Shown: positions 1-62,489 of the stretch, piece after piece
How positions within the stretch are numbered: position 1 is the stretch's first letter
Layout of the letters: every line of letters begins with the position of its first letter
DNA from: Macrostomum lignano
Lineage: Eukaryota
Assembly: GCA_002269645.1 (NCBI GenBank)
Contig: NIVC01000608.1
Span: forward strand, 186,001 to 250,000
DNA: 64,000 bases
Direction: 5' to 3'
Position numbers and translations under genes: made by a program
The notes under the pieces: generated by a model
Databases searched by the model: none
Told to the model about the DNA's origin: nothing
What the model saw: the letters and a program-made list of their open reading frames with translations, nothing else

Positions 1-707
1 TGATTTTGAGCTTTCAGATTGATTTTGATAAGAAAAAGTAGTTTCTATAGCAGAATTTACTTGTGACTCATTATTTTTAATATATTGAAAATATAATACA
101 TGAATTCTTTTTAGGCAGTAATTAGATTAGAAATTTTACGTTAAAAGTAATGACTTTTCTGGAAAAAAATCGAGCTAAGGATGTATACTGGTAACAAAAC
201 ATTTTATTTGGATGAATTCCTTGGTTGATATAAAGATAGAAGTTTCCAGAAAAATTGTCTATTCGTTTTCTACTACGATCGATATTTAATTTTAAGCATA
301 CATATATTTCACTTTTCGTTTTGGTGGGGAGAAAAGATCCCCACCAAAAGAGATTGAGAAAATGTAGCATATTTAGCTTGTACGCATTTCTCTTATGCAT
401 ACTAAGACATCTTGATGTTTTTTTTTTGCGGTGTAATTTTTTCATATTTCCTCCGCCATCATATTAACAGTTCTAGTAGATTTAGATAAATTTCAAGTTA
501 TCATGGCGTAAATTTTTAATGGGTTCAGAGTTTATATGTTGATTTTTGTAGTGAAGTAACAATTGCTTTGTATTATTCTATTTTAACAGCTTGTCAATTA
601 TACACTCTTGTTTAATTTATAGTAAAATTAAGTTAAAAGGCAACGAAGCATGTACTTGTTTTACTAAAATGAAAAATCTATACCTGCCTTAATGCTTGGC
701 TGGCAGC

Positions 708-2573
708 ATGTCTAAAGAGATTGTTCGAGCTGTATCCAGGCAGCTGGACCACTATCTACGAGTGCAGAGACTGGAGGATTCATTTGATCTGTCAGGCGCT
801 GGCCAGCCAATTGTCAATCATCCGAAGCTGCGCGAGCTGACGTTAATCAACACCCTGTCGCGGCATGACAGGCCCTTGAAGCACGAATTCAGCAGCAGCC
901 AGATGCGAATTAAGCTGCGACACATGCATCCGCGCGAGGATCAGGAGGGCGGCAGAGCCGGCAGCAGCGGGCGCCGCCGGCCTACAAAACTGGAACGGTC
1001 TTACACACGCCAGCTAGAGAGCTACCTGAGCCCGCCTCGGCCGCGGCCTCGTTCTGCGGCGGCCTCGTTTGCAGCTGGCGGCCACGGCGGCGGCAGCGGA
1101 GGTCTCGGATGTCCACCAGTGCCGCTGCGCTCGGCGCCGCCGATTCCGTGCAGCCGTCGGGAGCGACGCCAGCTGGTGCGTCGCAGCGGAAAAATTCTCG
1201 GCTATTTGGCCTCGCCGCATCGCGACAAAAACGGCGGCGGTGCCAGTGCCGGAGCAGATCGAGCCGAAGACGCTCGCCCGTTGAACGAGATGATCGAGGA
1301 GCGAGTTCAACGCGAAGTCCGGCGCGGCAGGCGCAGCAGGCGCCACCGACGCGCGAGCAGCGCTGACGGGCATGATTTGTCTCTGCCTCCGTCCCAAAAG
1401 CTGGCGTCGCCAGAGCCGCCGCAAGAAGCCGGGGCCAGCAAAAGGGAAGCCAAGCGGAGTCCCCGCTCGGAACCGCAGGTTGTTTACCCGCTGCGCACCT
1501 ACTCGGTGACGTCCTGCCAGGGCACGCAGACCAGCAGCGAATATGACCAGTCGGCTGGCCCGGCTCCCGGGCCCCGGTGCCACGCCTACATTCTGTATGT
1601 GACCACCGGCGACCGGATCGGGGCGGGCACCAACGCGGCCGTCTCCGCGGTGCTGTACGGCGAGCTCGGCAGCTCCGGCCTGAGGCCGATCCCGCTGGCC
1701 AACAGTCTGACGCACAAGCGGCCGTTCAGGCGCGGTCGAACGGACAAATTCGTGTTGGAAAATCTGCCCGACCTGGGCGGCCTGCGGCGTCTGCGTGTCG
1801 GGCACGCATCCGACGCTTTAAATCACTGGTACCTGCACTCGGCGACGGTCGTCTGCCCTAGCGGCAACCGATGGTTCTTTCCCTGCAGGCAGTGGCTCAG
1901 CGACAAGTCGCCTGATGGCCTGTCGACGAGGACTCTCAACGTTGAGCTGGTGGGCAGCGGCGTCGGCGGAGGCAACAGCGGCGAGGCTGATGTGGAGGCG
2001 CCCTCCCCAGCGGATCTGCTTCCAGCTCCGGGAGACGATGACAGACGCAGCAACGGTGGCAACCACGACAACGAAGACGACAACAATGATGCTGAAGATG
2101 GAGACAAGTTCAGCAGCGACAGCGACATCGATGACGGCGACGGCTTAGCTCAGGTGTCGTTCCGGCATCCGAACCCCGGCGGATCGATTCCGACGAGCAG
2201 TGACAGCTCCGACAATGAAGACAATAACGAGCGGCGTCGGCGGCGGCGTCGTCAGCGCGGCCAGGCTTCGTCGGAGGCGACGCCAACTGCGGCGACCAAA
2301 TCGTCAGCGTCTAGTGGCCGACGACCACCGGCATCGATAGAGTCATCGTCCTCGGTGGCGTCGACGGCCACGAAGTCATCTAAATCGTCAGTGGCACAGT
2401 CAGCCGCCGTCAAGCACAGCAGATGGCGGGGCGGCGTCGGTGGCGGCGGCTTTGTTGGTAGCGACGGCGACTCGGACAACAGCGGCGACAGCGACACGCT
2501 GGAAGAGTCGTCGGCTTCGAGCACCGGCCGAATATCGCCAGACGCCAGTCACCTGCTACTGGATGGTCGCTGA
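708..2573 (+). CDS. Single-exon PLAT/LH2-domain protein with an unrecognised N-terminal module and an acidic/Ser-rich tail
   Basis: ATG at 708 (the track starts at an upstream TTG). The central YILYVTTGDRIGAGTNAAVSAVLYGELG...FRRGRTDKF...DLGGLRRLRVGH...WYLHSATV...FFPCRQWL matches the LOXHD1/PKD1-type PLAT signature. The ORF is GC-rich within AT-rich flanks. Confidence 0.85.
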   Translation: MSKEIVRAVSRQLDHYLRVQRLEDSFDLSGAGQPIVNHPKLRELTLINTLSRHDRPLKHEFSSSQMRIKLRHMHPREDQEGGRAGSSGRRRPTKLERSYTRQLESYLSPPRPRPRSAAASFAAGGHGGGSGGLGCPPVPLRSAPPIPCSRRERRQLVRRSGKILGYLASPHRDKNGGGASAGADRAEDARPLNEMIEERVQREVRRGRRSRRHRRASSADGHDLSLPPSQKLASPEPPQEAGASKREAKRSPRSEPQVVYPLRTYSVTSCQGTQTSSEYDQSAGPAPGPRCHAYILYVTTGDRIGAGTNAAVSAVLYGELGSSGLRPIPLANSLTHKRPFRRGRTDKFVLENLPDLGGLRRLRVGHASDALNHWYLHSATVVCPSGNRWFFPCRQWLSDKSPDGLSTRTLNVELVGSGVGGGNSGEADVEAPSPADLLPAPGDDDRRSNGGNHDNEDDNNDAEDGDKFSSDSDIDDGDGLAQVSFRHPNPGGSIPTSSDSSDNEDNNERRRRRRRQRGQASSEATPTAATKSSASSGRRPPASIESSSSVASTATKSSKSSVAQSAAVKHSRWRGGVGGGGFVGSDGDSDNSGDSDTLEESSASSTGRISPDASHLLLDGR

Positions 2574-4252: not shown

Positions 4253-4924
4253 ATGTCCGACGAAATGGTTCGAGCGGTGGCTCGATCTCTCGATCTCTAT
4301 CTGAGAGTCAGGCGACTGGAAGAGGGCTTCGACCTCTCCAGCGTCGGCGCTGTAGGCGTCACCGGCGGCGGCGGCGGCGGCTACGGGTCCGTCATCAGCT
4401 CCCGGCGCCTGCACGACAAGCCGGTGAAGATGCAGTTCCGCAATCCGCTGACCAGGTGCCAAGTCGAAAGCATGTCGGGCGCTCTGTCCGGCCAGCCGGC
4501 GAATGATTCGACGGAAAAATCGAAAACTTCATCGTCGAGCAGGTCGCGTTCAGCCGTTCGACTGCGCCATCGACTGGACATCGTCGAGGCGACAACGGCG
4601 CTGACAACGCCGAGACGAACGCGCGGTCGGGTGCATCATCGCCAACGACAGCGAATGTCGACACGCGGCGGCGATGACAGCGACGACGAGAATCAGCGAA
4701 ACCGTCTGATTGACAACGCGAGCGCCATTCTGGACCTGCTGGCGCCGCCGGCCAGGCCGGGCGCTGAGCATCGCGCTGAGCATCGCGGCCGTCGAGTTGA
4801 TCGCGACGCTGAAACAAGAGAAGAAGATTCAGAGCAAGAAGAAAATGACAAAGAAGGACAAAAGTTGTTGAACAGCAGACGGCGCCTGTCAATTGAACTG
4901 CCCACGGGCTCTTATGGCAACTGA
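4253..4924 (+). CDS. 223-aa protein, tandem paralog of the N-terminal part of 708-2573, without PLAT
   Basis: MSDEMVRAVARSLDLYLRVRRLEEGFDLS aligns with MSKEIVRAVSRQLDHYLRVQRLEDSFDLS. Further shared blocks: HDKPVKMQF/HDRPLKHEF and ILDLLAPP/ILGYLASP. Confidence 0.7.
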   Translation: MSDEMVRAVARSLDLYLRVRRLEEGFDLSSVGAVGVTGGGGGGYGSVISSRRLHDKPVKMQFRNPLTRCQVESMSGALSGQPANDSTEKSKTSSSSRSRSAVRLRHRLDIVEATTALTTPRRTRGRVHHRQRQRMSTRGGDDSDDENQRNRLIDNASAILDLLAPPARPGAEHRAEHRGRRVDRDAETREEDSEQEENDKEGQKLLNSRRRLSIELPTGSYGN

Positions 4925-10500: not shown

Positions 10501-13500
10501 GATCCTCGATCCCTGATCCTCGATCCCTGATCCTCGATCCCTGATCCTCGATCCCTGATCCTCGATCCCTGATCCTCGATCCCTGATCCTCGATCCCTGA
10601 TCCTCGATCCCTGATCCTCGATCCCTGATCCTCGATCCCTGATCCTCGATCCCTGATCCTCGATCCCTGATCCTCGCTGTTAGGGGAGTGAAAAATCAAT
10701 CAATGTTAGGAGAGGTGTATAAAATTTTGACTGTTCCACGTTCACGCGATGTGATGTGACCAAAATTCTTTACATCTTGTCACAATGTTTTGTGCAAATA
10801 TTATTCATTAGATATTTCTTGGTTGATATAAAGCCAATTCCTTCAATATGGATGGATTGCTAATCTAGACAACATGGAAATAGGAATAGAATGGACTGAT
10901 AGACTAGCCAACGGATGAGGAACAGAATGGATTGCTAATCCGGCACCACCTTTCCGCTCGCCGAACCCACAGCTCGGGGTTCTCACCGTTTCTATTCACC
11001 AATCAGTCAAGCAACTCGGAGCAGCAGCAGCAGCAGCAGCTTCCCCAGCCGACGCCGCCATCGGAACTCGACCGTCCTTCCAAGCGACGCTCTGGCGCGG
11101 TGGCGGCGCAGTCTCGCACCGGCGGAGCGAGCCGCAGCGTTGAGCTGCCCGACGCAGTCGTCAGCGGCGTCGGGGTCGCCTTCGTTGTTGGCGCCGTCCC
11201 TGGGCTGTCGCTGTCGACTCCGCCAGGAGCGCAGCTGCATCAGCGGCATCAGGGATCGGGGGGCAGCGACGAACGGCAGGGTAGGATTCGAACTCAGGCC
11301 GTGCAGCAGCAGCAGCAGCAACGACTGCCGCAATTTGCGAGTTCAACGATTGGTGAGGCTGAAAAATGCGATGGTATGGGATCTGGGATCTCATACTGTA
11401 TCTGATGGGATCTGGGATCTCATTTTGTATCTGATGGGATCTGGGATCTCATACTGTATCTGATGGGATCTGGGATCTCATTTTGTATCTGATGGGATCT
11501 GGGATCTCATACTGTATCTGATGGGATCTGGGATCTCATACTGTATCTGATGGGATCTGGGATCTCATACTGTATCTGATGGGATCTGGGATCTCATACT
11601 GTATCTGATGGGATCTGGGATCTCATACTGTATCTGATGGGATCTGGGATCTCATACTGTATCTGATGGGATCTGGGATCTCATACTGTATCTGATGGGA
11701 TCTGGGATCTCATTTTGTATCTGATGGGATCTGGGATCTCATACTGTATCTGATGGGATCTGGGATCTCATACTGTATCTGATGGGATCTGGGATCTCAT
11801 ACTGTATCTGATGGGATCTGGGATCTCATACTGTATCTGATGGGATCTGGGATCTCATACTGTATCTGATGGGATCTGGGATCTCATACTGTATCTGATG
11901 GGATCTGGGATCCCATAATGCATCTGAGGGGATCTGGGATCCCATAATGTATCTGAGGGGATCTGGGATCCCATAATGCATCTGAGGGGATCTGGGATCC
12001 CATAATGCATCTGAGGGGATCTGGGATCCCATAATGTATCTGAGGGGATCTGGGATCCCATAATGCATCTGAGGGGATCTGGGATCCCATAATGCATCTG
12101 AGGGGATCTGGGATCCCATAATGCATCTGAGGGGATCTGGGATCCCATAATGCATCTGAGGGGATCTGGGATCCCATAATGCATCTGAGGGGATCTGGGA
12201 TCCCATAATGCATCTGAGGGGATCTGGGATCCCATAATGCATCTGATCGGATCTGGGATCCCATAATTCATTTGAGGGGATCTGGGATCCCATAATCTGA
12301 GGGGATCTGGGATCCCATAATGCATCTGAGGGGATCTGGGATCCCATAATGCATCTGAGGGGATCTGGGATCCCATAATGCATCTGAGGGGATCTGGGAT
12401 CCCATAATGCATCTGAGGGGATCTGGGATCCCATAATGCATCTGAGGGGATCTGGGATCCCATAATGCATCTGAGGGAATCTGGGATCCCATAATGCATC
12501 TGAGGGGATCTGGGATCCCATAATGCATCTGAGGGGATCTGGGATCCCATAATGCATCTGAGGGGATCTGGGATCCCATAATGCATCTGAGGGGATCTGG
12601 GATCCCATAATGCATCTGAGGGGATCTGGGATCCCATAATGCATCTGAGGGGATCTGGGATCCCATAATGCATCTGAGGGGATCTGGGATCCCATAATGC
12701 ATCTGAGGGGATCTGGGATCCCATAATGCATCTGAGGGGATCTGGGATCCCATAATGCATCTAAGGGGATCTGGGATCCCATAATGCATCTGAGGGGATC
12801 TGGGATCCCATAATGCATCTGAGGGGATCTGGGATCCCATAATGCATCTGAGGGGATCTGGGATCCCATAATGCATCTGAGGGGATCTGGGATCCCATAA
12901 TGCATCTGAGGGGATCTGGGATCCCATAATGCATCTGATCGGATCTGGGATCCCATAATTCATTTGAGGGGATCTGGGATCCCATAATCTGAGGGGATCT
13001 GGGATCCCATAATGCATCTGAGGGGATCTGGGATCCCATAATGCATCTGAGGGGATCTGGGATCCCATAATGCATCTGAGGGGATCTGGGATCCCATAAT
13101 GCATCTGAGGGGATCTGGGATCCCATAATGCATCTGAGGGGATCTGGGATCCCATAATGCATCTGAGGGGATCTGGGATCCCATAATGCATCTGAGGGGA
13201 TCTGGGATCCCATAATGCATCTGAGGGGATCTGGGATCCCATAATGCATCTGAGGGGATCTGGGATCCCATAATGCATCTGAGGGGATCTGGGATCCCAT
13301 AATGCATCTGAGGGGATCTGGGATCCCATAATGCATCTGAGGGGATCTGGGATCCCATAATGCATCTGAGGGGATCTGGGATCCCATAATGCATCTGATC
13401 GGATCTGGGATCCCATAATTCATTTGAGGGGATCTGGGATCCCATAATCTGAGGGGATCTGGGATCCCATAATGCATCTGAGGGGATCTGGGATCCCATA

Positions 13501-16500
13501 ATGCATCTGAGGGGATCAGGGATTTCATAATGTATCTGATCGGGGATCTGGGATCCCATATTGTTTCTGATGGAATCTGGGACCCCATATTGTATCTGAT
13601 GGAATCTGGGACCCCATATTGTATCTGATGGGAGCTGGTATCTGAGATTATTAACGTGAAACTGTGAATTCAATTAATTAAAATATGTTAAAAATTAATC
13701 ACATTTTTAACAAACGCACTGTCAAGGCACCAGCCTTAATGGAGCAAAAAATTCATACGAAAAACGCCGTTTCAGATTCCGAAGCAGCGGAAAGCCCGCC
13801 CTACCCGCCTATCAGCCAGTCGCAGATGATTGGATCTCCCGCAGCCAATCAGGTTGGAGCAGCGGCGCAACAGCCGGAGCCGCGTAAGACCGCAGCTCCA
13901 GGCCCAGCCAATCAGCAGAGGCGGTCGTCGAATATTGGCTCTACAGCCAATCAGGGCAAAATGGACGAGACTGGTTAGAGCTATGAGGATTTTACTTTTA
14001 TTGGGATAGGAATGTTGGGTGAAAGCTGCTACATTTGCATAATTATAAGAATTTCATAAACAGGTCTCATTTTTGTTAGACCAGGGGTCAGCAAACTCTG
14101 GCCCGCAGACCACATACGCCACGCAAAGCCTCTCTATCCGGCCCTGGTCCTTTGAATCTTCACAACAGCAATCCGGCCCGCTAAACGTTTATATCTCTTC
14201 TCAGCGTTGTTCTCTCTAATATCCTCTCTCCTTTCCTCTCTCCCCTCCCCTCCTCTCCTCTCCTCTCCTCTCCTCTCCTCTCCTCTCCTCTCCTCTCCTC
14301 TCCTCTCCTCTCCTCTCCTCTCCTCTCCTCTCCTCTCCTCTCCTCTCCCCTTCTCTCCTCTCCCCTCCTTACCTCTCCTCTCCCCTCCTCTCCTCTCCCC
14401 TCCTCTCCTCTCCTCTCCTGAGAAGAGATATAAACGTTTAGCGGGCCGGATTGCTGTTGTGAAGATTCAAAGGACCAGGGCCGGATAGAGAGGCTTTGCG
14501 TGGCGTATGTGGTCTGCGTATGTCCTCTCCTCTCCTCTCCTCTCCTCTCCTCTCCTCTCCTCTCCTCTCCTCTCCTCTCCCCTTCCCTCCTCTCCCATCC
14601 CCTCCTCTCCTCTCCCCTCCTCTCCTCTCCTCTCCTCTCCTCTCCTCTCCTCTCCTCTCCTCTCCTCTCCCCTTCCCTCCTCTCCCATCCCCTCCTCTCC
14701 TCTCCCCTCCTCTTCTCTCCCCTACCCTCCTCTCCTCTCCTCTCCTCTCCTCTCCTCTCCTCTCCTCTCCCCTCCCCTCCTCTCCTCTCCTCTCCTCTCC
14801 TCTCTCCTCTCCTCTCCTCTCCCTCCCCTCCCCTCCTCTCCTCTCCCTTCCTCTCCTCTCCCCTCCTCTCCTCTCCCCTCCTCTCCCCTCCTCTCCTCTC
14901 CCCTCCTCTTCTCTCCCCTCCTCTCCTCTCCCCTCCTCTCCTCTCCCCTCCTCTCCTCTCCTCTCCCCTCCTCTCTCCTCTCTTCTCCCCTTCCCTCATC
15001 TCTCGTCTCCTCTCTTCTGCTTAACTCCCTCGCCTCTCCTCCCCTATCTCCCCAATCTCTTCTCCATTCCCTTGCCTGTCTCCCCTGTTCTGCCCACCCC
15101 CCAGTTATCTTTGACTTACTTGACTTAGCTGCAGGGCTGTCCCGGAGGGGACACAGCGGGAAGGCGCGGGCGCCCATTCCGCTAGTCCCTGAACGGCCGA
15201 CGCGTCGCTATGGACGGAGGGTTGGCGCCGCCCAGGGAGGTCCCCCAGTGTCGCCAGCAGCTATGGTGCTCTCTGGAAAGGAGAGTTCAGCCCAGCGGGT
15301 GGCCCGAAGGTAGCGCATGAGCTGATTAAAGTTTTCGGGTTTGCACGCTTCAGTAATAGATATGTGTGGCCCGAGGTAAGTGAGTCTGGCCCGCGTGAAG
15401 GCGGGACAGATGCTGACGAAATGCTCAGCGGTTTCGTCACCTGAGTTGCAGAAACTACAGGTGGCGTTGGTGGCGTTGCCCTGCAGGTACTGGTGCCTGG
15501 AGAAGCAGCCGTGACCAGAGAGGGTCATGGTGGCAGCCCGGATGTCTCTGCGCGAGAGGCGCAAGAGGAGCTTCCGGAGCTGGTGAGAGGGCTGAGGGAC
15601 AGCGCCTCTGGATTGCCTGCAGTTCGTGCGGTTCGCCCAAGTCGAGCGGTGCTGAGTCCTGATCCACGCTTTGATGCGCGAGTCGATGACACAGCCAGGA
15701 ATCGGGACAAGAGGTTCGGGGCCGAGAGAGGAGCCGGAGGCACCAACTTTTGCAAGGGTGTCAGCCAACTCATTTCCTCGGATCCCCACATGCCCCGGAA
15801 CCCACTTAAGGGTAATTTTGTTGGCGGAACCCAACACGTTGAGGAGTTTGATACAGGGTTTTTTTTTTACCCCAATTAGTACCCCATGGGGTATTAGTCA
15901 ACTGATTTGGGGTACTATTTTGCCCATTAATACCCCAGAATGGGGTACTATTTTTTCGACTTTAATTCAAACAAGTTAAGCTTTTTTCTAAAATTTGCTG
16001 TTCAATTAAAATTCTGACTGGGCTGGTATGGGTCTTTGTACTAAGGTATATCCACTCGTGTGGTGAGTCAGACTGTCAGGCTAAAACTCTAAAAGTGAGA
16101 GAGGGTTGGAATTGGAAACTTGGAATTAGATTTAGATTAGATTGCGATACTGCAACGCCATCTAACTTACTTGAAATTTCGAAATCTAGCTTGTTCAGCC
16201 TTCAACGAAAGACACAAGAATGCAGTCAAACATTAGCAGCTGTGTTTTAACTCTGAATATAGTCTTGATTAAGTTATTTGACTGCGCCAGAATCAATTTT
16301 TATAAGAATTCAAGTAAACTACAGAGGCAAAATTAGAAATTTCATGGGGTATTACTCCTCCAAAATGGGGTACTACTCAGAGGCTTGATACCCCAATTCG
16401 GGTACTAATCAATAGCGAAAAAAAAACACTGGTTTGATACAGTCGAGGACTGTAGCAGAGTTGGTGCTGCAGCCACTGATGGCGTGCAAGGCAGCTTGGC

Positions 16501-19500: not shown

Positions 19501-22500
19501 TTTGGCAGCGTGGAGCTTAGTCATACTGTATTAAATGCAATTTCTGGCTAGAGCCCAGGGCCATCAAGGAGACTTGGACAACAGATCGTCCTCGTCCCAG
19601 GCCGCTGGGGCTTGACTGGGAGATGGGAGTTGGTCGACGTCCATGGCCTCCTCACCCCACCGGCCCCCCCAGCAGAGTCCTCAGGCTCCGATGACAGGAT
19701 GGAGGAAGCTTCCTCATCTGCATCTTTACCTTCAGACCCCACCAGGGTGGCCGAGGAGAGCTCGGATTCCGAAGACCCGGCCTCGTCCTCAACTCCTTCT
19801 CCGACTGGCAGGTTTGGTTCCCGGGGCTTGGCCGGAGCCGTTACCGCGGTCGCCGAACTGCTGCTAGCAGAGGGGCGAGATGCAGCTTTGGCTTTGGGAT
19901 CGGCTTGCGCCTTTCCTTGGGCCTTAGACTGCGCCCCGCTCTTGCCGGAGATGCCGGGTTGGCAGTAGCCTTCCCTTTGGCAGACTTTCCTCGGCGCATC
20001 TTGAGCTTGAGGGCACCTAGCTGGAAAGAGGATCCATTAGGGTACCGACTCGCCCAAGTGCTGGAAAGGCCGAGGACAATTGAGTTGCCCGTCTCCCCCT
20101 GCGGACTTTACGGTGATACACCAGTCCACTAGCAGGGAGGTCGGGGTTCAGACGCAGTAGGACCCGGCGAATAACGTCTGGTCCAGCTGCGGTGCTCTTA
20201 GCAGGGACGAAAACCACATAGGGTATCGTCTTTGGACGCTGGCCCTCGCGAAGAAAAAGAGCTCCGCCAAGGTCAGCATCCAAGGAGACCGTCGGTAGCC
20301 GCTGGAGCAGCTGCCGAGCGTCCTCCTCGCTGCTAGGAGCAATAAGAACGAATGTGCTTCGCAGCACCATCCGCTCAATGCCGATGGAGATTCCCTCCTC
20401 GACAGTCAGCTCAATCAGATAGGAGTCAACAGCACTCCACACTTTTTGAAGCTGATCAGTGGTCCAGTCCTGGTCGCGACCTTGGATGATCACTCCCGGG
20501 ATTTTGGCCTTGGCCTTCGCCGCAAAGGTAGCTCCCGAAGGAACCTCCTTGTTGGCAGTGGCCATTTGTTGCGCCGTGGTTTCGGCCTCAGCAGCCGCAG
20601 CAGCATCTCCAGGGAGCGCCGCCGCTGAACTACCGGAGCTTCCACCGGCCGGCCCGTCTGGTTGCCTTGGGACGCCAGTCGCTTCAGCATCCATGGTGGA
20701 CGCCGCCGCTTTGGCCCCCGCAGCTCCCTTCTTGGCCTGCCTTTTGGCGCGTTGTTTAGCGCGTTTGCGCTCAAGCCGAGCCCGCTGAGCTTCATCGGAT
20801 CTGCCAGATTTGGCCGGTCCTTTAGGCTCAGAGCTCGCGGTTCCCTTAGATCCACCAGCGGAGCTGGCAGGTCTTAGGGTTTTTTGAGTTTGGTAGCTCT
20901 GGTCGGATCTGCCAGCAGAGCCAGCCGGTCCTTCCTTTGCCACAGTTGAATCAGTCGGTTGGGATCTGCCAGCAGGGCCGGCCGGTCCTTCGGACTGAGG
21001 TTGGGGTTTAGAAGGGTCCCCGTCCCTAGAAAAAGCTTTGTTATCCATAATCGGCTCGAAGGCCATGATAAAAGGTTGGTGGGCTACCCTCAAAGGGGCG
21101 CGGTACCCACCCGGCCGCTCCACCTGACCGGGCAGTAGGCCAATAGCACCCTCAAGGCTGGCCCGACACCAGGAGGGGGACCGCTTGCGACCGGACTACT
21201 CCCCGGCCTTCCAGCCCATCGGCACGGTCAACACCTTAGGCATTAGAGAGTACGTTGAGCAGTACCACGGCCTGCAGGTTGGCGAGCCAGACCCGCATAC
21301 CCAAATTCGGCCGAAGCCACTGGATAGAGTCGCCAGCGCCGGAGCCCAGTCTGTCCAGCAGCCCTAGGGACTGCCTTGAACACACGCGGGGACGAGTACC
21401 CTGGGTCGACTTGCGAGACAGCGTGGGGGGGTCTGCGGCTGCCAGAGGCAAATAGAGGGTGCAGACCTCCCACCAGCCTTGACCTGCTGAAGATAGGGGC
21501 AGGCGTGAAGCATCGCAGACCTTAGCCCATGGGCCTAGTCTGTCTCATACTTCACTGGCATGCTGAATACGCCTTCGCGTGCTCTCCTCTCCTCTCCTCT
21601 CCTCTCCTCTCCTCTCCTCTCCTCTCCTCTCCCCTTCCCTCCTCTCCCATCCCCTCCTCTCCTCTCCCCTCCTCTTCTCTCCCCTACCCTCCTCTCCTCT
21701 CCTCTCCCTCCCTCCTCTCCTCTCCTCTCCTCTCCTCTCCTCTCCTCTCCTCTCCTCTCCCCTCCCCTCCCCTCCTCTCCTCTCCTCTCCCCTCGTCTCC
21801 CCTCCTCTCCTCTCCCCTCCTCTTCTCTCCCTCCTCTCCTCTCCCCTCCTCTCCTCTCCCTCCTCTCCTCTCCTCTCCCCTCCCCTCTCTCCCTCCTCTC
21901 CTCTCCCCTCGTCTCCCCTCCTCTCTCCTCTCCCCTCCTCTCCTCTCCTCCTCTCCTCTCCCCTTCCCTCATCTCTCGTCTCCTCTCTTCTGCTTAATTC
22001 CCTCGCCTCTCCTCCCCTATCTCCCCAATCTCTTCTCCATTCCCTTGCCTGTCTCCCCTGTTCTGCCCCCCCCCCCCAGTTATCAGTTATGCTCTAGGTT
22101 GTCTATCAGGCCCTTGAGGTAAACAAAGTTTGCCGAGCCCTGAGTTGAAGTTTTTAGTTAGAGGCGAGGGGCTTTTTGCACCCTAGCGCACTTTAAGCGA
22201 CATTGATTGCATAAGCAGAGCCAAGCAGAGATTCCAATTTAGCCCCAAATTACGAGCTAATGTGACTGCACTTGGAATCGAGCCTGGGCCGCTGGAACAT
22301 CTGAGCGCCGGGCTGGACCTCTGGGCTACGGCCCCCTGGTTATGCAAGCAGATCTTTAGTAGTGTTTTTTTAATGTTTCAAATAATCAGCCCTAAAAATA
22401 CTACTGAAATTGGCCAAACCAAGTAGGCCAGTAGCGAGTATTTCGCGTATAAAAATCTAAGGAAAGTTTAATGTAAGTATAACGGTTCGGAAACAACCTT

Positions 22501-22653: not shown

Positions 22654-23471
22654 GTAGTTAAACTAGTCCTTCCCTAGCTCACTGAACTCTGTGCAAATTA
22701 TAATCCTGCATAATTCGTATTTTAATTAAAAACCAATTGTTATTTAGTCCATGCTACGGTTTAGGCGTAGATCTTTTGATTTACAATTACTGTGAGTTTA
22801 GAGTGCAAATTACAATGATAATAATATTCCAGCAAAGTCGCTCCAAAGTCTGTGTTCCTATTCTATTTTGCTTTGCAGTCAATTGGCAGTTGATGCATCA
22901 CAGAATAATACACAAGAAAAGTAAGAAAGATGTACGTATGCATATACTAGTCATATGCATATACAATCTATTGCACAAATGGCACGATATTCAACGATTC
23001 TCACTCTGATTCTGAGAAGGTTAGATTTTACCTATAAGCACACCCGGGCGCCAATTAGTACTTCTCCTTGGTTTAAAGTTCATCAGCACGTCAAACACAC
23101 GTGTACGAACTATGCGTGATCTCTGGCTTCGGTGGCCGCTGGCCTTCACCTAGGCGGAGCTTCTGGCCCTTCAACAGGTGGTACAGAACCGTTAGTTAAT
23201 TCCCGCATGTTAGATTCTGCAGATAATATGGCTCGCAGATTAATGTCTTTTATCTGCGGCTCAAAATGAAATAAGACGGGAGAATGGGAGTTGTGAAGGA
23301 TGTTTTTAAGCGAATATTTTGGTAATTAATTGTGCCGTTTGTTTTCTATATTATCCAAACCTGTACTCATACATGGCAAAAATAATGTATAGCTCTGATG
23401 AATATTACTCTAAGCAAAACACAATCTCATTTTTGTCAATCAATTTTATTAATCAGTCCTTGCTAGATGCT

Positions 23472-23723
23472 TTAGCCCTTTTTAGCGTAGCACTTTCTGG
23501 CTAAGTGGAGGAGGCGCCTGAAAATCTTACAGGCGCTTTTAATGCGCCACTTCTTCTGCGGCTGGGCGGCCCGCTCCTCCATCTTCTCCGAGTCCTCCAA
23601 CTGCGACAGGGCCTCCAGCGCGTCGATGGCCTCCGCCTCCTCCTCTGAAATATCCTTGTTGGGACTGGCGGCGACAGCCAGGACTGCACAGAGCAGAAGT
23701 CCGAGAGCCAGCTGGTACTTCAT
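23472..23723 (-). CDS. 83-aa secreted prepropeptide, putative amidated cationic antimicrobial or toxin peptide
   Basis: Signal-like MKYQLALGLLLCAVLAVAA, acidic spacer SPNKDISEEEAEAIDALEALSQLEDSEKMEERAAQPQ, and KKWRIKSACKIFRRLLHLARKCYAKKG*. Start context GCGACCATG. TATA-like CATAAATA at 23788-23781 and AATAAA at 23450-23445. Confidence 0.85.
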   Translation of the reverse strand: MKYQLALGLLLCAVLAVAASPNKDISEEEAEAIDALEALSQLEDSEKMEERAAQPQKKWRIKSACKIFRRLLHLARKCYAKKG

Positions 23724-24460
23724 GGTCGCTGAGTTGCTGCTCAGGTGAGGCTTGGCTGTCCCGCTCCGCCACATGCTCCGTATTTATGCAGTTTCAGCCG
23801 GCTGTTTACCCGACGGTTCGGCAACTCAAATCCGTCATTTGCAGTCTCTGAACTCCAGGATTTGCTGCATCATTGGCGTGGCTCACTGCTGTCAGACGGC
23901 TGAATATCTGGGATTCGCAAGCCGGCTCTGCCTCTCTGTTCTGCACTGGAGCCTCACTGATGCTAATTTGTCGGCTTTTTATCAGCGTTTCATTAACCAC
24001 TTCTACCTCTGTCTCTCTTCTTCCCTTGTCTGGCGAGATGTGAAAAAAAACGTTTTTTTAAATTGACTAACTTTCGGCTGCCATAAGTTTGCTCTACGTG
24101 AAGCGATTGACTTGAAACTTAACAAAATTATTCATTGACTTATTCTCTGTCAAAATGTAAAATCTCAACTCTTTAACTCAATCAGAGCGGAAATTGTATG
24201 CATATGAATTTTGCCTGCTTTTTCTGCTGTTTGTGACGCTCACACCAAGGGTCAGGCGATAGGGCTCTGTGTACATGGCAGTGTACAGTGTTTTGGTATA
24301 GCTTAATTTATAGCCTGCTCGGCTCCCCCGTGGGAAGGCTACGTTTAGCCATGACAGTTTGCGAGCTATGACTCGGTCAGTGTGCGAGTCCGAGTTTTGG
24401 GAGGCTGCAATTGTTGCTTCATTAGGCAATGAGACTGGCCTCTGAAGCTGCGCTGTGCGC

Positions 24461-32184: not shown

Positions 32185-33602
<1,418 letters not shown>

Positions 33603-49700: not shown

Positions 49701-52700
49701 GGGAGCCGGCGCCTCGGCTCGCGACCTGCTAATTGGCACCTGCTGGATGCCGCTGCGCGATTTGGCCGTTCGTCGGCGTTCGCCGGCTCGCGTAGCCGGC
49801 CGCTACGCTCTGGTGAAGCCGGGCGTTCGCTGCTTCGACGGCGCCTGTCTTCGATTGAAAGCGACGCTGACTGACTCGGACGAGCCGCCGTCGGAGCCGG
49901 AGAATTCCGTTGACGAGGAGGAGGCTGTTGCTGCCGCTGTTGCTGATGCAGGCGTTGACGATAGCGAAGATGTCGGCGGCGGCGTCGGCAGTCAGCGGCG
50001 TCAGCGACATCAGCAGGTGACTCGGCGGCAGCGCCTGGCGCATCAGCACACGGTGCCGCTCCGGGTGGCCATCGAGGAGGCCAAGCGGCTTTGTCCGGTG
50101 CCAGACGCCGCCACTGGAGAGGAGCGACTGCCGCCCAGCGCATACGTTACTGTGAGACTCCTTGGATTGTTCTCTCAAACTTTAGAATCTTCCTTCTGTC
50201 CTTTAAGGATCTCCCTCGAACTTGCCGAGAATCTCTCTCGAACTTGCCGAGAATCTCTCCCGAACTTGCCGAGAATCTCTCTCGAACTTGCCGAGAATCT
50301 CTCCCGAACTTGCCGAGAATCTCCCTCAGACTTCCCGAGGATCTCTTTGAACTTATATTCTCCTTCGACCTTTTAAATTACAAACAGGAGTCTTAAGCGC
50401 AGAAGATTCTACTAGGCTTTTCTCAATCGCTCAAAAGACTGCGTAAAAGAACAAAGAGAAATTCTAAATTTTTTCAGGTACAACCTGCCGACCGATCTAA
50501 GCCGCTAGCCACTGATGTGAAGGCGGCAACTAACAATCCAGCTTGGGGTTTTGTTGCCGAGGCCCGTTTCGACAAAAGCCTGTTCGCTTATCCCGATAGA
50601 GGCTGTCTGCTGACATTCAAGGTAACATTAATTAGGATTACTAATTTGTACTACTAACTGTTGAATTTTAGTTAGTAACTACCGAAAGTGCGGGATTTTA
50701 GTTTAGTTTTGTCACTACCGAAAGTGTGAGATTTTAGTTTAGTTTAGTAGCTACCGGGAGTGTGGGATTTTAGTTTAGTTTAGTAGCTACCGGGAGTGTG
50801 GGATTTTATTTTAGTTTAGTAGCTACCGGGAGTGTGGGATTTTATTTTAGTTTAGTAGCTACCGGGAGTGTGGGATTTTCGTTTAGTTTAGTAGCTACCG
50901 GGAGTGTGGGATTTTATTTTAGTTTAGTAACTACCGGGAGTGTGGGATTTTAGTTTAGTTTAGTAGCTACCGGAAGTGTGGGATTTTAGTTTAGTTTAGT
51001 AGCTATCGGGAGTGTGGGATTTTATTTTAGTTTAGTAACTACCGGGAGTGTGGGATTTTAGTTTAGTTTAGTAACTACCGGAAGTGTGGGATTTTAGTTT
51101 AGTTTAGTAGCTACCGGGAGTGTGGGATTTTATTTTAGTTTAGTAACTACCGGGAGTGTGGGATTTTAGTTAAGTTTAGTAACTACCGGAAGTGTGGGAT
51201 TTTAGTTTAGTTTAGTAGCTACCGGGAGTGTGGGATTTTAGTTTAGTTTAGTAGCTACCGGGAGTGTGGGATTTTATTTTAGTTTAGTAGCTACCGGGAG
51301 TGTGGGATTTTATTTTAGTTTAGTAGCTACCGGGAGTGTGGGATTTTATTTTAGTTTAGTAACTACCGGGAGTGTGGGATTTTAGTTTAGTTTTGTCACT
51401 ACCGAAAGTGTGAGATTTTAGTTTAGTTTAGTAGCTACCGGGAGTGTGGGATTTTAGTTTAGTTTAGTAGCTACCGGGAGTGTGGGATTTTATTTTAGTT
51501 TAGTAGCTACCGGGAGTGTGGGATTTTATTTTAGTTTAGTAGCTACCGGGAGTGTGGGATTTTATTTTAGTTTAGTAACTACCGGGAGTGTGGGATTTTA
51601 GTTTAGTTTTGTCACTACCGAAAGTGTGAGATTTTAGTTTAGTTTAGTAGCTACCGGGAGTGTGGGATTTTAGTTTAGTTTAGTAGCTACCGGGAGTGTG
51701 GGATTTTAGTTTAGTTTAGTAGCTACCGGGAGTGTGGGATTTTATTTTAGTTTAGTAGCTACCGGGAGTGTGGGATTTTAGTTTAGTTTAGTAGCTACCG
51801 GGAGTGTGGGATTTTAGTTTAGTTTAGTAACTACCGGGAGTGTGGGATTTTCGTTTAGTTTAGTAGCTACCGGAAGTGTGGGATTTTAGTTTAGTTTAGT
51901 AGCTACCGGGAGTGTGGGATTTTATTTTAGTTTAGTAACTACCGGGAGTGTGGGATTTTAGTTTAGTTTTGTCACTACCGAAAGTGTGAGATTTTAGTTT
52001 AGTTTAGTAGCTACCGGGAGTGTGGGATTTTATTTTAGTTTAGTAGCTACCGGGAGTGTGGGATTTTATTTTAGTTTAGTAACTACCGGGAGTGTGGGAT
52101 TTTAGTTTAGTTTTGTCACTACCGAAAGTGTGAGATTTTAGTTTAGTTTAGTAGCTACCGGGAGTGTGGGATTTTAGTTTAGTTTAGTAGCTACCGGGAG
52201 TGTGGGATTTTAGTTTAGTTTAGTAGCTACCGGGAGTGTGGGATTTTATTTTAGTTTAGTAGCTACCGGGAGTGTGGGATTTTAGTTTAGTTTAGTAGCT
52301 ACCGGGAGTGTGGGATTTTAGTTTAGTTTAGTAACTACCGGGAGTGTGGGATTTTCGTTTAGTTTAGTAGCTACCGGAAGTGTGGGATTTTAGTTTAGTT
52401 TAGTAGCTACCGGGAGTGTGGGATTTTATTTTAGTTTAGTAACTACCGGGAGTGTGGGATTTTAGTTTAGTTTAGTAACTACCGGAAGTGTGGGATTTTA
52501 GTTTAGTTTAGTAGCTACCGGGAGTGTGGGATTTTATTTTAGTTTAGTAACTACCGGGAGTGTGGGATTTTAGTTTAGTTTAGTAACTACCGGAAGTGTG
52601 GGATTTTAGTTTAGTTTAGTAGCTACCGGGAGTGTGGGATTTTAGTTTAGTTTAGTAGCTACCGGGAGTGTGGGATTTTAGTTTAGTTTAGTAGCTACCG

Positions 52701-55677
52701 GGAGTGTGGGATTTTAGTTTAGTTTAGTAGCTACCGGGAGTGTGGGATTTTAGTTTAGTTTAGTAGCTACCGGGAGTGTGGGATTTTAGTTTAGTTTAGT
52801 AGCTAAGTGTGGGATTTTAGTTTAAGTTTAGTAGAGTGTAAGACTGGGATTTAATTCCAGCTTGCTATACACTCTTTTTCCTGTCCAGGTGTGGCACAGC
52901 TACGGAGACGCGGTCGAGAACGATCGCTTGATTGGCACAGCCTCAGTAGACCTGTCGCCGTTGCTATTCGGTTTCAAGCAGGTGTTAGGCTGGTACGATG
53001 TGCAGGATTACCGGGAGCGCTGCCGCGGGCATCTGTACATTGGCATTACACCTCTGGAGCCGCTGACTGGCTTGGCTAAACAATCGACAGCGCCGATATT
53101 GGCTTCTACCGCGTCGACTGGTTCGTTTAACGACGTCGGTCGGCGTCACGCGACAACAGCGCCGATAGGTTCGGCTATCGTTATTGACGACGGAGCAGCG
53201 GCAGCGGCTGACGGAGGAACGTCGCGTTCGATGCTACATCGTAGCCTGCAGCACCAGATGGCCGAGTTGGACAATCTCACTACTAGACTGCGGCGTCGGC
53301 TGTTGAATCCGAACGCTGACAACGGCGACGATGATAGCCATGTTGATGATAGCGGCGGCGCTAGCGTCGGTTCTAACAACTCTGCGCCGCTGGTCAGGTC
53401 GCCGCCTTTGCCTGCTGCTCCGCCGCCTCCGGCTGCTCGAGTTCAGGCGAGCGTCACTAACAGCGGCGGAGATGGCGGCAACAGTAGCAGCAATCCGTAC
53501 GGACTGGATTTCGATATCCGTTCGGTAAGTTTTATTACTTTGTGGAAAGTAGTTGTGTGGAGGTATAAAGCAAAGACTACTCCAGTAGGACGGAAAACCT
53601 TGTTTCTTGGAAAGTTTTACGAGCTAGGTTTTCGAAACGAAAAGCTTTATGAATATCGATAGAGCTATAAGAAAGGCACAACATATCAAAGGATAAACAT
53701 TGGGTCTGCTTCCTATCGAAAGTAATAATAATTTTTGTGCTGAAAAAATGAAAACTTTCAATCTTCGCAGTGTATTTTTTTCGAGAAAACCAGCTTGCTA
53801 CAATTTTTCAAGAAATGAGGTTTCCCATCCCTCTACTTAAGTAGTCCTTGGTATAAAGTTGATTGATTAATGTAGCTGTACATCCTACTACAACTACTAT
53901 AACTACTACTACTACTACTGCTACTGCTACTACTACTACTACTACTGCTACTGCTACTACTACTACTACTACTGCTACTGCTACTACTACTACTACTACT
54001 ACTAATAACAGTATATCTATACTTTCCAGGTGCTGGATCAGGCCAGGAAGCTATTAGAATCGCCAGAACAAGAAGTTACTGAAGCAACATCTAGCGGCGG
54101 TTTCGCCAGTCAGCAACAGCAGCAGCAGAATCAGCAGCGAGCCGGCAGAGATCAAAGCCATCGTTCTACAGTAGAGAAATCTGCCAGCTCTACTGGCAAA
54201 GATTTGTCAGGCGCCGCCTACGACTACGACTACGATTTTGACGACGACGAAGATGGCGAAGGCGAAGGCTTGGTGCCGGTGAAGCCGTTGAACGACATCT
54301 CCGGTATGCTGGCGGCGATGCAACCGCACGTTGGCAAGAGTCCAACTGCCGAGGAAGAGGAACGGGAAGGTTCGCCGGTAGATCGGGATCGCGATGATGA
54401 TGCTGAGAATGATGATGAAGACGACGAAGGAGGTCGAACTCCGGTGAACTCGAAAACAACAGACGATGGCGAGGACGAAGAAGTGAGCGAGATTATTGAT
54501 GAATTGCCGCCAGCTGAGAACAACGAAGCTGAGTATGACGATGACCAGCGAACTGATTCGATTGTCCGCGCCAACGAGACCCCTTCTCAGTTGGATGAGA
54601 ATGAGTCTGAAGCTGAGGATGATGATGAAGACGCAGTTTCGGCATCGCCTCCGCCAGTGGCCAGCGTGCCGCAGTCGGCTAGAAGCGAGAATCTGGCCGC
54701 CAGGCGGGCAGTGGACATCCGTCTGGGCCAGCAGACTGTTGATCTGGAGGCCGGTGAGCCGCCTCTGTCTAATAGCGCCGACTGCCTATTGCCGAGCTTC
54801 TTCGGACCGCCTAGCGATCTGCTGTCTAGACTGCGCCACTCCAGGATGGTCGCCGAGAATGCCGGGGTGAGCTTGGGCCCCTGTCACAGATAGAGTCAGT
54901 GCTGTCTTGGCCACTGTCACATATAGAGTCAGTGCTGTCTTTGTCACTGTCACAGATAGAGTCAGTGCTGTCTTTGTCACTGTCACAGATAGAGTCATTG
55001 CTGTCTTGGCCACTGTCACATATAGAGTCAGTGCTGTCTTGGTCACTGTCACAGATAGAGTCAGTGCTGTCTTGGTCACTGTCACAGATAGAGTCATTGC
55101 TGTCTTGGCCACTGTCACATATAGAGTCAGTGCTGTGTTGGTCACTGTCACAGATAGAGTCAGTGCTGTCTTGGCCACTGTCACATATAGAGTCAGTGCT
55201 GTCTTGGTCACTGTCACAGATAGAGTCAGTGCTGTCTTGGTCACTGTCACAGATAGAGTCAGTGCTGTCTTGGTCACTGTCACAGATAGAGTCATTGCTG
55301 TCTTGGCCACTGTCACATATAGAGTCAGTGCTGTCTTGGCCACTGTCACATATAGAGTCAGTGCTGTCTTTGTCACTGTCACAGATAGAGTCAGTGCTGT
55401 CTTGGTCGCTATCTTAGTTATTTACCTTAGTAACGAGCAGCCATTCTCCCAATCATCCCCACTGCAGCACGAGGCAGCTGCCTCCGCAGCCGCAGCCGCC
55501 GGTCCAACAGTTGACCCGGCAAAAGTTGCCGAAGCCCGTCAGCTGGTGGAACGAGTCGAACAGCGTCGACGAAACCGGCTGTTTCAGGTGGCGGAGGCTG
55601 CGGCTGTTGATGATGCGGAACGGGCAGCTTCCACCAGCCGGTTGGCCAGGGTGTTCAATGCCAAATTCGCTCACTAA
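42766..55677 (+). CDS. C2CD3: C2 domain-containing protein 3 (centriole distal-end and ciliogenesis factor)
   Basis: Exons 42766-44421, 45647-46591, 46853-47616, 48074-48683, 49405-50151, 50478-50621, 52889-53524, 54030-54866 and 55468 (or 55441)-55677; all junctions GT-AG and in phase; ~2180 aa. Motifs [14 protein letters not shown]...[12 protein letters not shown]...[21 protein letters not shown] and [15 protein letters not shown]...GWY match vertebrate C2CD3 as recalled. Confidence 0.92.
44438..45570. repeat. (ACTG)n/(ACTC) array, C2CD3 intron 1
   Basis: Visible directly. Confidence 0.97.
46629..46843. repeat. (ATCT)n array, C2CD3 intron 2
   Basis: Visible directly; gives the IYLS tract inside the 45710-47650 ORF. 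Confidence 0.96.
47715..47985. repeat. Degenerate 20-21-bp repeat (TGTAGAATCGCATTTCTACC), C2CD3 intron 3
   Basis: Visible directly. Confidence 0.85.
48750..49205. repeat. ~41-bp repeat (CATCAAGTGTAGTTAGTTGCTAGGGCCTGAGGCTGATGGGG), C2CD3 intron 4
   Basis: Visible directly, ~11 copies. Confidence 0.93.
50210..50345. repeat. 22-bp repeat (CTCGAACTTGCCGAGAATCTCT), C2CD3 intron 5
   Basis: Visible directly. Confidence 0.9.
50680..52820. repeat. 36-bp minisatellite (AGCTACCGGGAGTGTGGGATTTTAGTTTAGTTTAGT), ~59 copies, C2CD3 intron 6
   Basis: Visible directly. Confidence 0.97.
53571..53850. mobile_element. 280-bp hAT MITE, C2CD3 intron 7
   Basis: 8-bp TSD GTATAAAG at 53563-53570 and 53851-53858. Imperfect TIRs CAA(A/G)GACTACT..AGTAG. 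Confidence 0.85.
53886..54003. repeat. (ACT/GCT)n trinucleotide array
   Basis: Visible directly. Confidence 0.95.
54880..55408. repeat. 33-bp repeat (CACTGTCACAGATAGAGTCAGTGCTGTCTTGGT), ~16 copies, last C2CD3 intron
   Basis: Visible directly. Confidence 0.96.
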
Positions 55678-62219: not shown

Positions 62220-62489
62220 ACTTTGCCTGTCATATTTTCAGCTTTTAATAATCTCCGATGCATTATGCACAATTTTAAAAGTTTAAAAACAAATTTATGC
62301 ATTTTTGTGTTGGCGTTTAATGGTGCTGTATTATAATAACTATTGCAATTTAATAAAGTACATGCTTTTTAATACGAGAAAGGTCAACGTGTTTTGATTT
62401 TGATGTTTGACTTGATTTTCATATCATTTCTACGCTAATTTGGGTTATTTTATCTATGCATGCATAGTAATAGGGTTTGTAGGCTTCTG

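Follow-up and report, generated by a model that had tools for sequence, protein, structure and literature searches.

The window analyzed here, a 64-kb stretch of scaffold NIVC01000608.1 (assembly GCA_002269645.1, Mlig_3_7) of the free-living flatworm Macrostomum lignano, carries on its minus strand a compact gene for a putative secreted peptide precursor, whose promoter elements, coding sequence (CDS) and polyadenylation signal lie between positions 23445 and 23811. The open reading frame (ORF) is intact. Its 83 residues, read from the minus strand, fall into four parts, MKYQLALGLLLCAVLAVAA + SPNKDISEEEAEAIDALEALSQLEDSEKMEERAAQPQ + KK + WRIKSACKIFRRLLHLARKCYAKKG: a predicted signal peptide, an acidic spacer, a predicted dibasic processing site and a 25-residue cationic tail that ends in Gly (Table 1). 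This layout had been put forward in a preliminary description of the DNA, and it is real; the residue counts given there are all correct (19 for the signal, 37 for the spacer and, with KK counted, 27 including 11 Lys or Arg for the C-terminal part), and the TATA-like box, the good start context, the AATAAA signal and the flatworm origin were likewise rightly identified.

Table 1. Features of the peptide gene, listed in the direction of transcription; positions are those of the window
Feature	Position	Strand	Remarks
Degenerate copy of the family upstream motif, reading GGGTAAACAGCCGG	23798..23811	-	Aligned at the position of the motif in paralogs
TATA-like box, CATAAATA	23781..23788	-	65 nt before ATG
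Likely 5' untranslated leader	23724..23753	-	GenBank 5'-partial CDS begins at 23753
Coding sequence, single exon, 83 codons + TAA	23472..23723	-	ATG at 23723, TAA at 23474-23472
Predicted signal peptide, residues 1-19, MKYQLALGLLLCAVLAVAA	23667..23723	-	n/h/c-region layout
Anionic propiece, residues 20-56, SPNKDISEEEAEAIDALEALSQLEDSEKMEERAAQPQ	23556..23666	-	37 residues, 12 Asp or Glu, net charge about -9.5
Lys57-Lys58, predicted dibasic processing site	23550..23555	-	Family conservation
Predicted mature peptide, residues 59-82, WRIKSACKIFRRLLHLARKCYAKK	23478..23549	-	9 Lys or Arg plus His, no acidic residue
C-terminal Gly83, predicted amide donor	23475..23477	-	Directly before the stop codon
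AATAAA polyadenylation signal	23445..23450	-	21 nt past the stop codon

The start codon stands in the context gcgACCATGa, with A at -3. An in-frame ATG occurs upstream, at 23774, but it precedes the likely transcription start, falling between that site and the TATA box, and has no counterpart in the paralogs described below; the Met at 23723 was therefore taken as the start. A GenBank CDS at the locus (P0001), annotated as 5'-partial and encoding 93 residues (KPHLSSNSAT-MKYQ...), maps to L002:3001-3282, which corresponds to window positions 23753-23472. Counted from the first base of the TATA-like box, it starts 35 nt further on, a distance that fits a TATA-driven start and suggests that 23753 is near the transcription start. 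The GenBank annotation of NIVC01 was built from RNA-seq-based transcript models (PMC5730564), so the presence of an annotated CDS here implies a transcript model for the peptide gene. Exact-sequence look-ups with the 83-residue and 100-residue forms gave no match and no independent transcript contig. Between the window gene and eight paralogs, the ratio of nonsynonymous to synonymous substitution (dN/dS) over the signal and spacer ranges from 0.38 to 0.71, with dS of 0.45 to 0.82, indicating that this region is under purifying selection. The intact ORF, the TATA box, the start context, the AATAAA signal, the transcript-based CDS and the constrained signal and spacer together establish that the compact gene is real.

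The paralogs emerged in stages. A search with the single sequence returned one relative, P0002 (a Logan contig from run SRR31628392), with 60% identity over the signal and spacer, and a profile that included P0002 added an M. lignano protein from UniRef. When 1.84 billion representative proteins were searched exhaustively with the profile in HMMER, 10 true matches came back and none outside the Macrostomum family was credible; of the eight newly found members, six map to Mlig_3_7 scaffolds. An alignment of 11 sequences, used for a third search, reached 29 clusters at 90% identity, and every cluster with a source name is a "hypothetical protein BOX15_Mlig..." of M. lignano. E-values of the homologues run from 4.7e-10 to 1e-44, and the window protein itself scores between 1.4e-24 and 1.8e-39 against the profiles. 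By these comparisons the window gene is one divergent member of a Macrostomum "MKWQLALGLLLC" prepro-peptide family of about 30 genes. The family has so far been seen only in Macrostomum, and other Macrostomum genomes or transcriptomes may lack protein entries in the databases searched.

Family members occupy at least seven other scaffolds. Those on L003 form a tandem pair and those on L004 an inverted pair, and L008 carries a second annotated gene, of 77 residues, about 3 kb upstream; no second copy was found inside the 64-kb window by tblastn with the prepro region. The preliminary description had proposed a search for paralogs, which thus gave 29 clusters and none in the window, and had named a match to a known neuropeptide or structural family as grounds for rejecting its reading; no such match was found in Pfam or PDB.

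Members share their anatomy up to the dibasic site. The common signal reads M(K/R)(W/Y)Q(L/I/F)(A/V)LGLLLC(A)ALAVA, and the window protein, which fits the pattern M-[KR]-[WY]-Q-[LIF]-[AV]-L-G-L-L-L-C, has a signal (MKYQLALGLLLC) nearly identical in the alignment to the family consensus MKWQLALGLLLCAALAVA; cleavage is predicted after VAA and before SP. Acidic spacers of about 35-40 residues follow, with the common motif EE.AEA..ALEAL...(D/E)ES..SEE, and the window spacer SEEEAEAIDALEALSQLEDSE carries EE.AEA..ALEAL...(D/E). Both Lys57 and Lys58 are kept in at least 90% of the 20 aligned members. The window protein, with KK-WRIK...AKKG, agrees with the family definition of a cationic tail after KK that has an aromatic or aliphatic first residue and an ending of G, GK or GKR. 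That ending, a classical signal for C-terminal amidation once basic residues have been trimmed, occurs in 21 of 24 family tails; a terminal Gly serves as amide donor for peptidylglycine alpha-amidating monooxygenase.

A few members depart from this plan. In the paralog at L005:3068-3340 (NIVC01001664.1), which encodes WRMRHRIHFRWRRVYGVVHRVYRGYRRIICGKR, a one-base deletion in a GCGCGC run between signal and spacer shifts the frame, and the GenBank annotation covers only the frame downstream of it; the copy is either a pseudogene or an assembly error. P0015 (BOX15_Mlig001477g4) repeats the signal and the start of the spacer, and P0016 (BOX15_Mlig004661g1) repeats a 21-residue piece of the spacer. 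Both internal duplications are either real or due to collapsed tandem copies in the transcript models. An element of about 185 nt, 83-87% identical among window positions 22151-22336, L006:4210-4568 and L003:5720-5976, follows three family genes at a distance of 1-2.5 kb, each time in the same relative orientation, and may represent either a dispersed repeat or what is left of the duplicated segment.

Past KK the sequences of the members cannot be aligned. The tails vary from 7 to 34 residues and are all cationic. A short-tail group, of 7-11 residues, comprises FVRVRARIRLG, FVRVRVRLG, FIRARVRVRLG, IFRVHVRFG, FVRVHVRFG, IFRVRVRIG, IFRVRVHIG, IFRVRARIHIG, WLRVRARVRIG, FIHIHFG and GFHVHFHG. In a second group, exemplified by WRIRFRRIRIRWRRVYRVVRTAYRIYRHLPFPGK, WLLRRIRIRWRRVLRVASRVYRIYRYLPIGK and FRIRIRWGRVARNVLRLLGK, the tails are Arg-rich and 20-34 residues long. 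Among the singletons are WRRRRRFRWRKAIRVAGKVAKAVL, WFSRWFRITYRRRGGERRYLRSYFRLG and FLRVRLPRVRMPRVRLPRVRLPRLRVRFRWSKK, which is a Pro/Arg repeat; the tail of P0002 is a Pro/Arg repeat, and one outlier, AVYKPNYYKD, is weakly basic with a net charge of +1. The tail of the window protein is the sole Lys-rich and the sole two-Cys tail in the family.

The boundary between the kept and the variable part is also visible in the DNA. Nucleotide similarity of the window gene to its paralogs extends from about 18 nt before the ATG to 23542-23543, just 3' of the KK codons, and no nucleotide match to the paralogs was found beyond 23542. In the nearly identical tandem pair L003a/b, five differences fall within the 33 nt that encode the tail and three in the other 417 nt, which comprise the promoter, the prepro region and the proximal 3' flank. 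Judging from these sequences, the tails of the family appear to change fast, in contrast to the export and processing module, which is retained. Charge varies in concert between the two parts: across 24 members the charge of the spacer and that of the tail are correlated with a Spearman coefficient of -0.81, a more cationic tail going with a more acidic spacer.

Short paralog tails such as FVRVRARIRL and IFRVRVRI form perfect alternating cationic/hydrophobic strands, with a near-maximal strand moment of 1.3-1.45 at 180 degrees. To judge from the sequences, the property common to the tails is cationic amphipathicity in whatever fold, not sequence, which argues for a membrane-type target rather than a specific receptor. 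The tails of P0006 (IFRVHVRFG) and P0020 (FVRVHVRFG) would end in ...VRF-amide after amidation, as flatworm FMRFamide-like neuropeptides similarly do at their C-terminus; the resemblance may reflect chance or mimicry.

The window tail itself has nine Lys or Arg and no Asp or Glu, Cys at tail positions 7 and 20, and the terminal Gly. The preliminary description had held that it fits an amphipathic helix, and this holds for the core of the peptide. On a helical wheel of residues 3-23, Ile, Ala, Cys, Ile, Phe, Leu, Leu, Leu, Ala, Cys and Tyr fall on one side and Lys, Arg and His on the opposite side. The best 18-residue helical hydrophobic moment is 0.77, a value reached by 0.5% of shuffled sequences (p = 0.005) and within the range computed for classical helical antimicrobial peptides. 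For the whole 24-mer the moment is 0.42 and not significant (p = 0.11), because Arg2 and Lys24 lie on the apolar side; the significance is confined to the core. AlphaFold2, run with the family alignment, modeled three helices, over the signal (residues 2-19), the spacer (28-46) and the tail (58-82), and in the tail helix the predicted local distance difference test (pLDDT) averaged 69 over residues 61-70 and 79 over residues 71-80. A comparison of the window tail with the long Arg-rich tails of paralogs gave a common WRI start and an (F/W)RR in the middle, but the similarity is marginal (p = 0.02-0.08), and we therefore claim no ancestry for the window tail. The calculated monoisotopic mass of the amidated 24-mer is 2986.76 Da reduced and 2984.74 Da bridged; with the Gly still attached the peptide would have 3044.76 Da.

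The two Cys, 13 residues apart, had been taken as a single disulfide. The residues are there, but the bridge between them is doubtful. In one continuous helix, at a rise of 1.5 A per residue, residues i and i+13 are about 19.5 A apart, so that Cys7 and Cys20 could not be joined within it. A hairpin closed by the two Cys would, judging from the sequence, contain no turn-forming residues and would mix charged and apolar side chains on both faces; unlike the helical form, it would not be amphipathic. Among the 23 other family tails there is no Cys pair, and P0008 has a single Cys. The modeled single helix, the non-amphipathic hairpin and the lack of a Cys pair in paralogs make an intramolecular disulfide doubtful, and free thiols or a disulfide-linked dimer are equally possible.

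Most of the copies compared also have a promoter module in common. In an alignment of eight copies from -60 to +45 around the TATA box, the seven other than that in the window carry the motif GGAAA(A/C)ACGTG(C/G)C, with GCATAAAT 10-12 nt further on; the TGCATAAAT box is likewise present upstream of seven other family copies. In L001, L003 (two copies), L004 (two), L005 and L006, (T/C)GCATAAAT and the ATG are separated by 87-124 nt. A DNA pattern of fixed spacing missed the module because the length of the spacer varies, and it was found by alignment. The window copy keeps the TATA part, CTGCATAAATACG, exactly as in L005, while its upstream motif is without the ACGTG core; no match to the family promoter motif with three or fewer mismatches was found near the window gene. 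At the 3' end the paralogs have AATATA-type hexamers about 120-145 nt past the stop codon instead of AATAAA, so the 3' untranslated region is not conserved. A scan for bacterial-type promoters and terminators was uninformative for this eukaryotic gene.

We searched Pfam with the window protein and 10 paralogs, and PDB with the tail and the family profile, and found no meaningful match to any family; the preliminary description had likewise failed to recognize one. Sub-threshold Pfam matches to papillomavirus E7 and to the latarcin precursor were rejected as compositional, and a short "Lock_Gag1-like" match obtained with 10 paralogs was rejected as spurious and likewise compositional. The latarcin match (PF10279; E = 0.059) reached 14.1 bits, where the cut-off is 25, and was limited to residues 22-50, in the low-complexity acidic spacer. 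Spider latarcin precursors resemble the window gene in having a signal, an acidic propiece and a cationic amphipathic helical peptide, often ended by Gly. They differ from it in the spider processing motif (Arg, with Glu within the three residues before it), where the window gene has QPQKK.

The frog-skin precursors of dermaseptins and brevinins (FSAP) are similar to the family in more respects: a conserved signal and acidic spacer lead up to a dibasic site and a hypervariable cationic peptide, often amidated through a terminal Gly, and the genes are multiple, with divergence concentrated in the mature part. The Macrostomum family differs in its KK rather than KR site, its single-exon genes, its own promoter and its flatworm host; its tails include alternating (R-V)n strands and Pro/Arg repeats besides helices, and there is no sequence similarity. 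Pfam returned no Brevenin-type match, either with the window protein (E <= 10) or with 10 paralogs (E <= 1). Nor did the window protein match the cecropin profile in Pfam. Cecropins have the mature peptide directly or shortly after the signal and a helix-hinge-helix, whereas the window precursor has a 37-residue acidic spacer and a single predicted helix.

Annelid arenicin-type precursors release beta-hairpins closed by one disulfide, whereas the window tail is predicted to be helical, and no BRICHOS domain of the kind found in those precursors was detected in the window protein by Pfam. Hydra arminins, which are taxon-restricted and multi-copy, are made as small secreted precursors whose N-terminal half is anionic and whose cationic C-terminal half becomes the active peptide on release; the profile search of 1.84 billion representatives returned no cnidarian protein, and no sequence similarity to arminins was seen. 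Myticalins and other lophotrochozoan linear peptides are, like the family, cationic, often Arg- or Pro/Arg-rich and multigene. In myticalin precursors the mature peptide directly follows the signal and an anionic C-terminal extension comes after it, the reverse order. Flatworm neuropeptide precursors keep the amidated peptide and vary the spacer, the opposite of what is seen in the Macrostomum family, and no conserved C-terminal motif such as RF-amide runs through the 24 family tails. The likeness to cecropin, dermaseptin and venom precursors drawn in the preliminary description therefore needs to be narrowed: like that to frog-skin, latarcin and arminin precursors, it is by analogy one of architecture and not of homology, and for cecropins neither the profile nor the layout agrees.

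According to Irvine et al. 2023 (PMC10414684), the antimicrobial-peptide repertoire of flatworms is undescribed, and the families usual in Lophotrochozoa, namely myticalins, big defensins and CS-alpha-beta peptides, are absent from them. In the covered part of the S5 table of that study, a list of computational "AMP-like peptides" (AMP, antimicrobial peptide), we found five paralogs, BOX15_Mlig024774g1, Mlig024774g2, Mlig001477g4, Mlig008283g1 and Mlig025063g1, with 73-100% agreement among 11 predictors. Paralogs with the same N-terminus as the window protein had passed the SignalP 4.1 filter of the study. The five were tagged there as "Same genome" or "Ungrouped" and so were removed from prioritization as species-specific, and their peptide boundaries had been set by ProP inside Arg runs, not at the conserved KK. 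The four flatworm peptides synthesized in the study (PMC10414684) are different sequences. The part of the S5 file covered has no entry for the window protein, an absence that may reflect its 5'-extended annotated CDS, in which the signal peptide is not N-terminal.

Searches of the literature by peptide sequence, locus tag and Logan run accession returned no relevant paper, the one match being an unrelated Xenopus paper of 1992. Literature on antimicrobial, cationic or amidated peptides of Macrostomum and on its cell atlases had nothing specific to the family, nor had the supplements of a gut-gene paper. The family has thus been touched by a computational screen but neither recognized as one family nor described there. 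The preliminary description had called the gene new. It belongs to no known family, yet it is one divergent member of about 30, these are already annotated as hypothetical proteins, and five of its paralogs have been listed as AMP-like. On present comparisons, what is new is the family as a lineage, which has no detectable relatives, and what is known is the type of precursor.

These properties lead us to favor, with some reserve, a processed, amidated and membrane-active candidate peptide that serves most likely in host defense against microbes. The 19-residue signal peptide would direct the precursor into the secretory pathway and then be removed, and the acidic helical propiece, at about -9.5, would neutralize the cationic tail, at about +9, and so keep it harmless during transport and storage. 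A protease of the prohormone-convertase type would cut after Lys57-Lys58, and the terminal Gly would be converted to a C-terminal amide, giving the 24-mer WRIKSACKIFRRLLHLARKCYAKK-NH2. On an anionic membrane, residues 3-23 would fold as an amphipathic helix with both Cys on the apolar side, and the helix would permeabilize the membrane. Secretion into mucus, epidermis or gut would put this activity to use against microbes. The processing steps up to amidation and the final, defensive role were derived from the sequence together with comparison within the family. In frog-skin, venom and other defense-peptide families the tails diversify quickly while the export and processing module is kept. 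By analogy, the conserved prepro region, the hypervariable cationic tails, the near-universal amidation signals and the charge compensation fit the pattern of defense and toxin peptide families.

Several points weigh against this reading. The ACGTG core of the promoter motif has been lost from the window copy, which may mean different regulation or weaker expression, and transcription of the gene is deduced solely from the annotated CDS. The AlphaFold model is of moderate confidence, with a mean pLDDT of 63.7. Further dibasic sites (RR, RK and KK) lie inside the tail, and a convertase could cut there and fragment the peptide. The correlation of spacer and tail charge ignores relatedness among the paralogs. 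Finally, that secreted peptides diverge rapidly is in keeping with toxins and reproductive proteins too.

The last point bears on a role of the same membrane-active or otherwise bioactive peptide against other organisms and not against microbes, as a lytic or toxic secretion of pharyngeal, gut or rhabdite glands directed at prey such as diatoms or at predators, or as a seminal-fluid allohormone passed to the mating partner, a role that we consider unlikely, although it is the main rival. A secreted, processed, lineage-restricted peptide with fast-diverging tails would suit it too, since reproductive and venom peptides show the same pattern, and the ...VRF-amide ends (FVRVHVRFG, IFRVHVRFG) could act on receptors of a partner or of prey. 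That ending is not conserved, however, as other paralogs end in RL, RI, HI, HF, FH or KK, and in charge, amphipathicity and amidation the tails are closer to antimicrobial peptides than to known flatworm toxins or seminal proteins. In favor of such a role, many secreted M. lignano proteins limited to the prostate have no known homologues (PMC5977470). Against it, the supplements of the seminal-fluid screen, in the portion covered, contain no family sequence, a weak argument as they hold few sequences.

Decay or silencing of the window copy, with the rest of the family functional, is improbable. Pointing to it are the loss of the ACGTG core that seven other copies retain in the promoter motif, a Lys-rich two-Cys tail seen in no other member, a position in repeat-rich DNA with a class C receptor gene on one side and a broken retrotransposon on the other, and the frameshift in another paralog, that of L005. 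Against it stand the intact ORF, the TATA box, start context and AATAAA signal, the transcript-based annotated CDS and a prepro region with dN/dS below 1. As an amphipathic helix, moreover, the tail surpasses 99.5% of its own shuffles, which would not be expected if the sequence were drifting.

Signal, acidic spacer, dibasic site and C-terminal Gly are the grammar of neuropeptide precursors as well, and flatworms have many amidated neuropeptides. A neuropeptide or peptide-hormone precursor, whose amidated C-terminal peptide signals through a receptor, is nevertheless very unlikely because the pattern of conservation is inverted: signal and spacer are kept, while the peptide differs in length, sequence and predicted structure between recent paralogs. 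A net charge of +9 with an amphipathic helix would also be unusual for a receptor ligand, Pfam and PDB gave no match to a known peptide family, and no paper was found with these sequences. That the ORF is a chance product without a gene, as its mere 83 codons and repeat-rich non-coding surroundings might suggest, is refuted by about 30 paralogs with the same signal and spacer and with the TATA box, whose E-values of 1e-10 to 1e-44 place it beyond chance.

If host defense is indeed the role, the family as a whole may represent the first gene-encoded antimicrobial arsenal of a free-living flatworm, a proposal that we make tentatively: some 30 or more single-exon genes would have a single export and processing cassette in common, along with a promoter module (GGAAA(A/C)ACGTGCC plus TATA), while their peptide warheads would be swapped or rapidly rewritten among structurally unrelated classes. 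The warhead classes may include alternating Arg-Val strands, Tyr/Arg/His-rich tails, Pro/Arg repeats and the Lys-rich two-Cys helix of the window gene. A lineage-specific family with the hallmarks of defense-peptide precursors would fill a gap in the effector repertoire of flatworms, and in M. lignano, for which transgenesis and RNA interference are available, candidate effectors are directly testable. About 20 different short peptides, predicted to be amidated, can be read off the precursors as candidates for synthesis, and the conserved promoter offers a handle on regulation. Should the promoter module respond to infection, M. lignano would become tractable for the study of innate effectors in flatworms and of the birth of antimicrobial peptides; should the peptides prove inactive, a large, fast-evolving set of secreted amidated peptides would still call for an explanation. 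The family is in addition a clean natural example of one secretion and processing cassette joined to unrelated peptide warheads, and bears on the evolution of bioactive peptides.

A receptor gene and a retrotransposon flank the peptide gene. The upstream neighbor, encoded by the same strand, is a class C G-protein-coupled receptor gene (31332-25342, minus strand), with ANF_receptor, NCD3G and 7tm_3 domains in its exons and introns filled with minisatellites, which ends about 1.6 kb away. Downstream is a non-long-terminal-repeat (non-LTR) retrotransposon (21123-15208, minus strand) with endonuclease, reverse transcriptase, RNase H and an ORF1-like region. This copy has probably decayed, as its domains are distributed among several frames. 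Similar (CTCTC/TCCTC)n arrays flank it at 14226-15045 and 21582-21991, an arrangement that looks as if the element had inserted into a pentanucleotide array.

Tandem repeats, both micro- and minisatellites, are extremely dense in the window, with 51 rows in the output of Tandem Repeats Finder; examples are (AGAC) x355, a 29-mer x78, a 36-mer x60, a 51-mer x30 and a 28-mer x55, and tracts include 32185-33602, 11378-13642, 50667-52834, 57595-59125 and 62487-64000. Many lie within introns of a long plus-strand gene at 42.7-55.7 kb, and long spurious ORFs result. A scan against Rfam found no known RNA families in the window. Near the start of the window, a long ORF with a PLAT/LH2 domain (696-2573, plus strand) is followed 3.5 kb downstream by a second ORF (4253-4924, plus strand). 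The N-termini of the two are similar (MSKEIVRAVSRQLDHYLRVQRLEDSFDLS and MSDEMVRAVARSLDLYLRVRRLEEGFDLS, respectively), which suggests that they are tandem paralogs.

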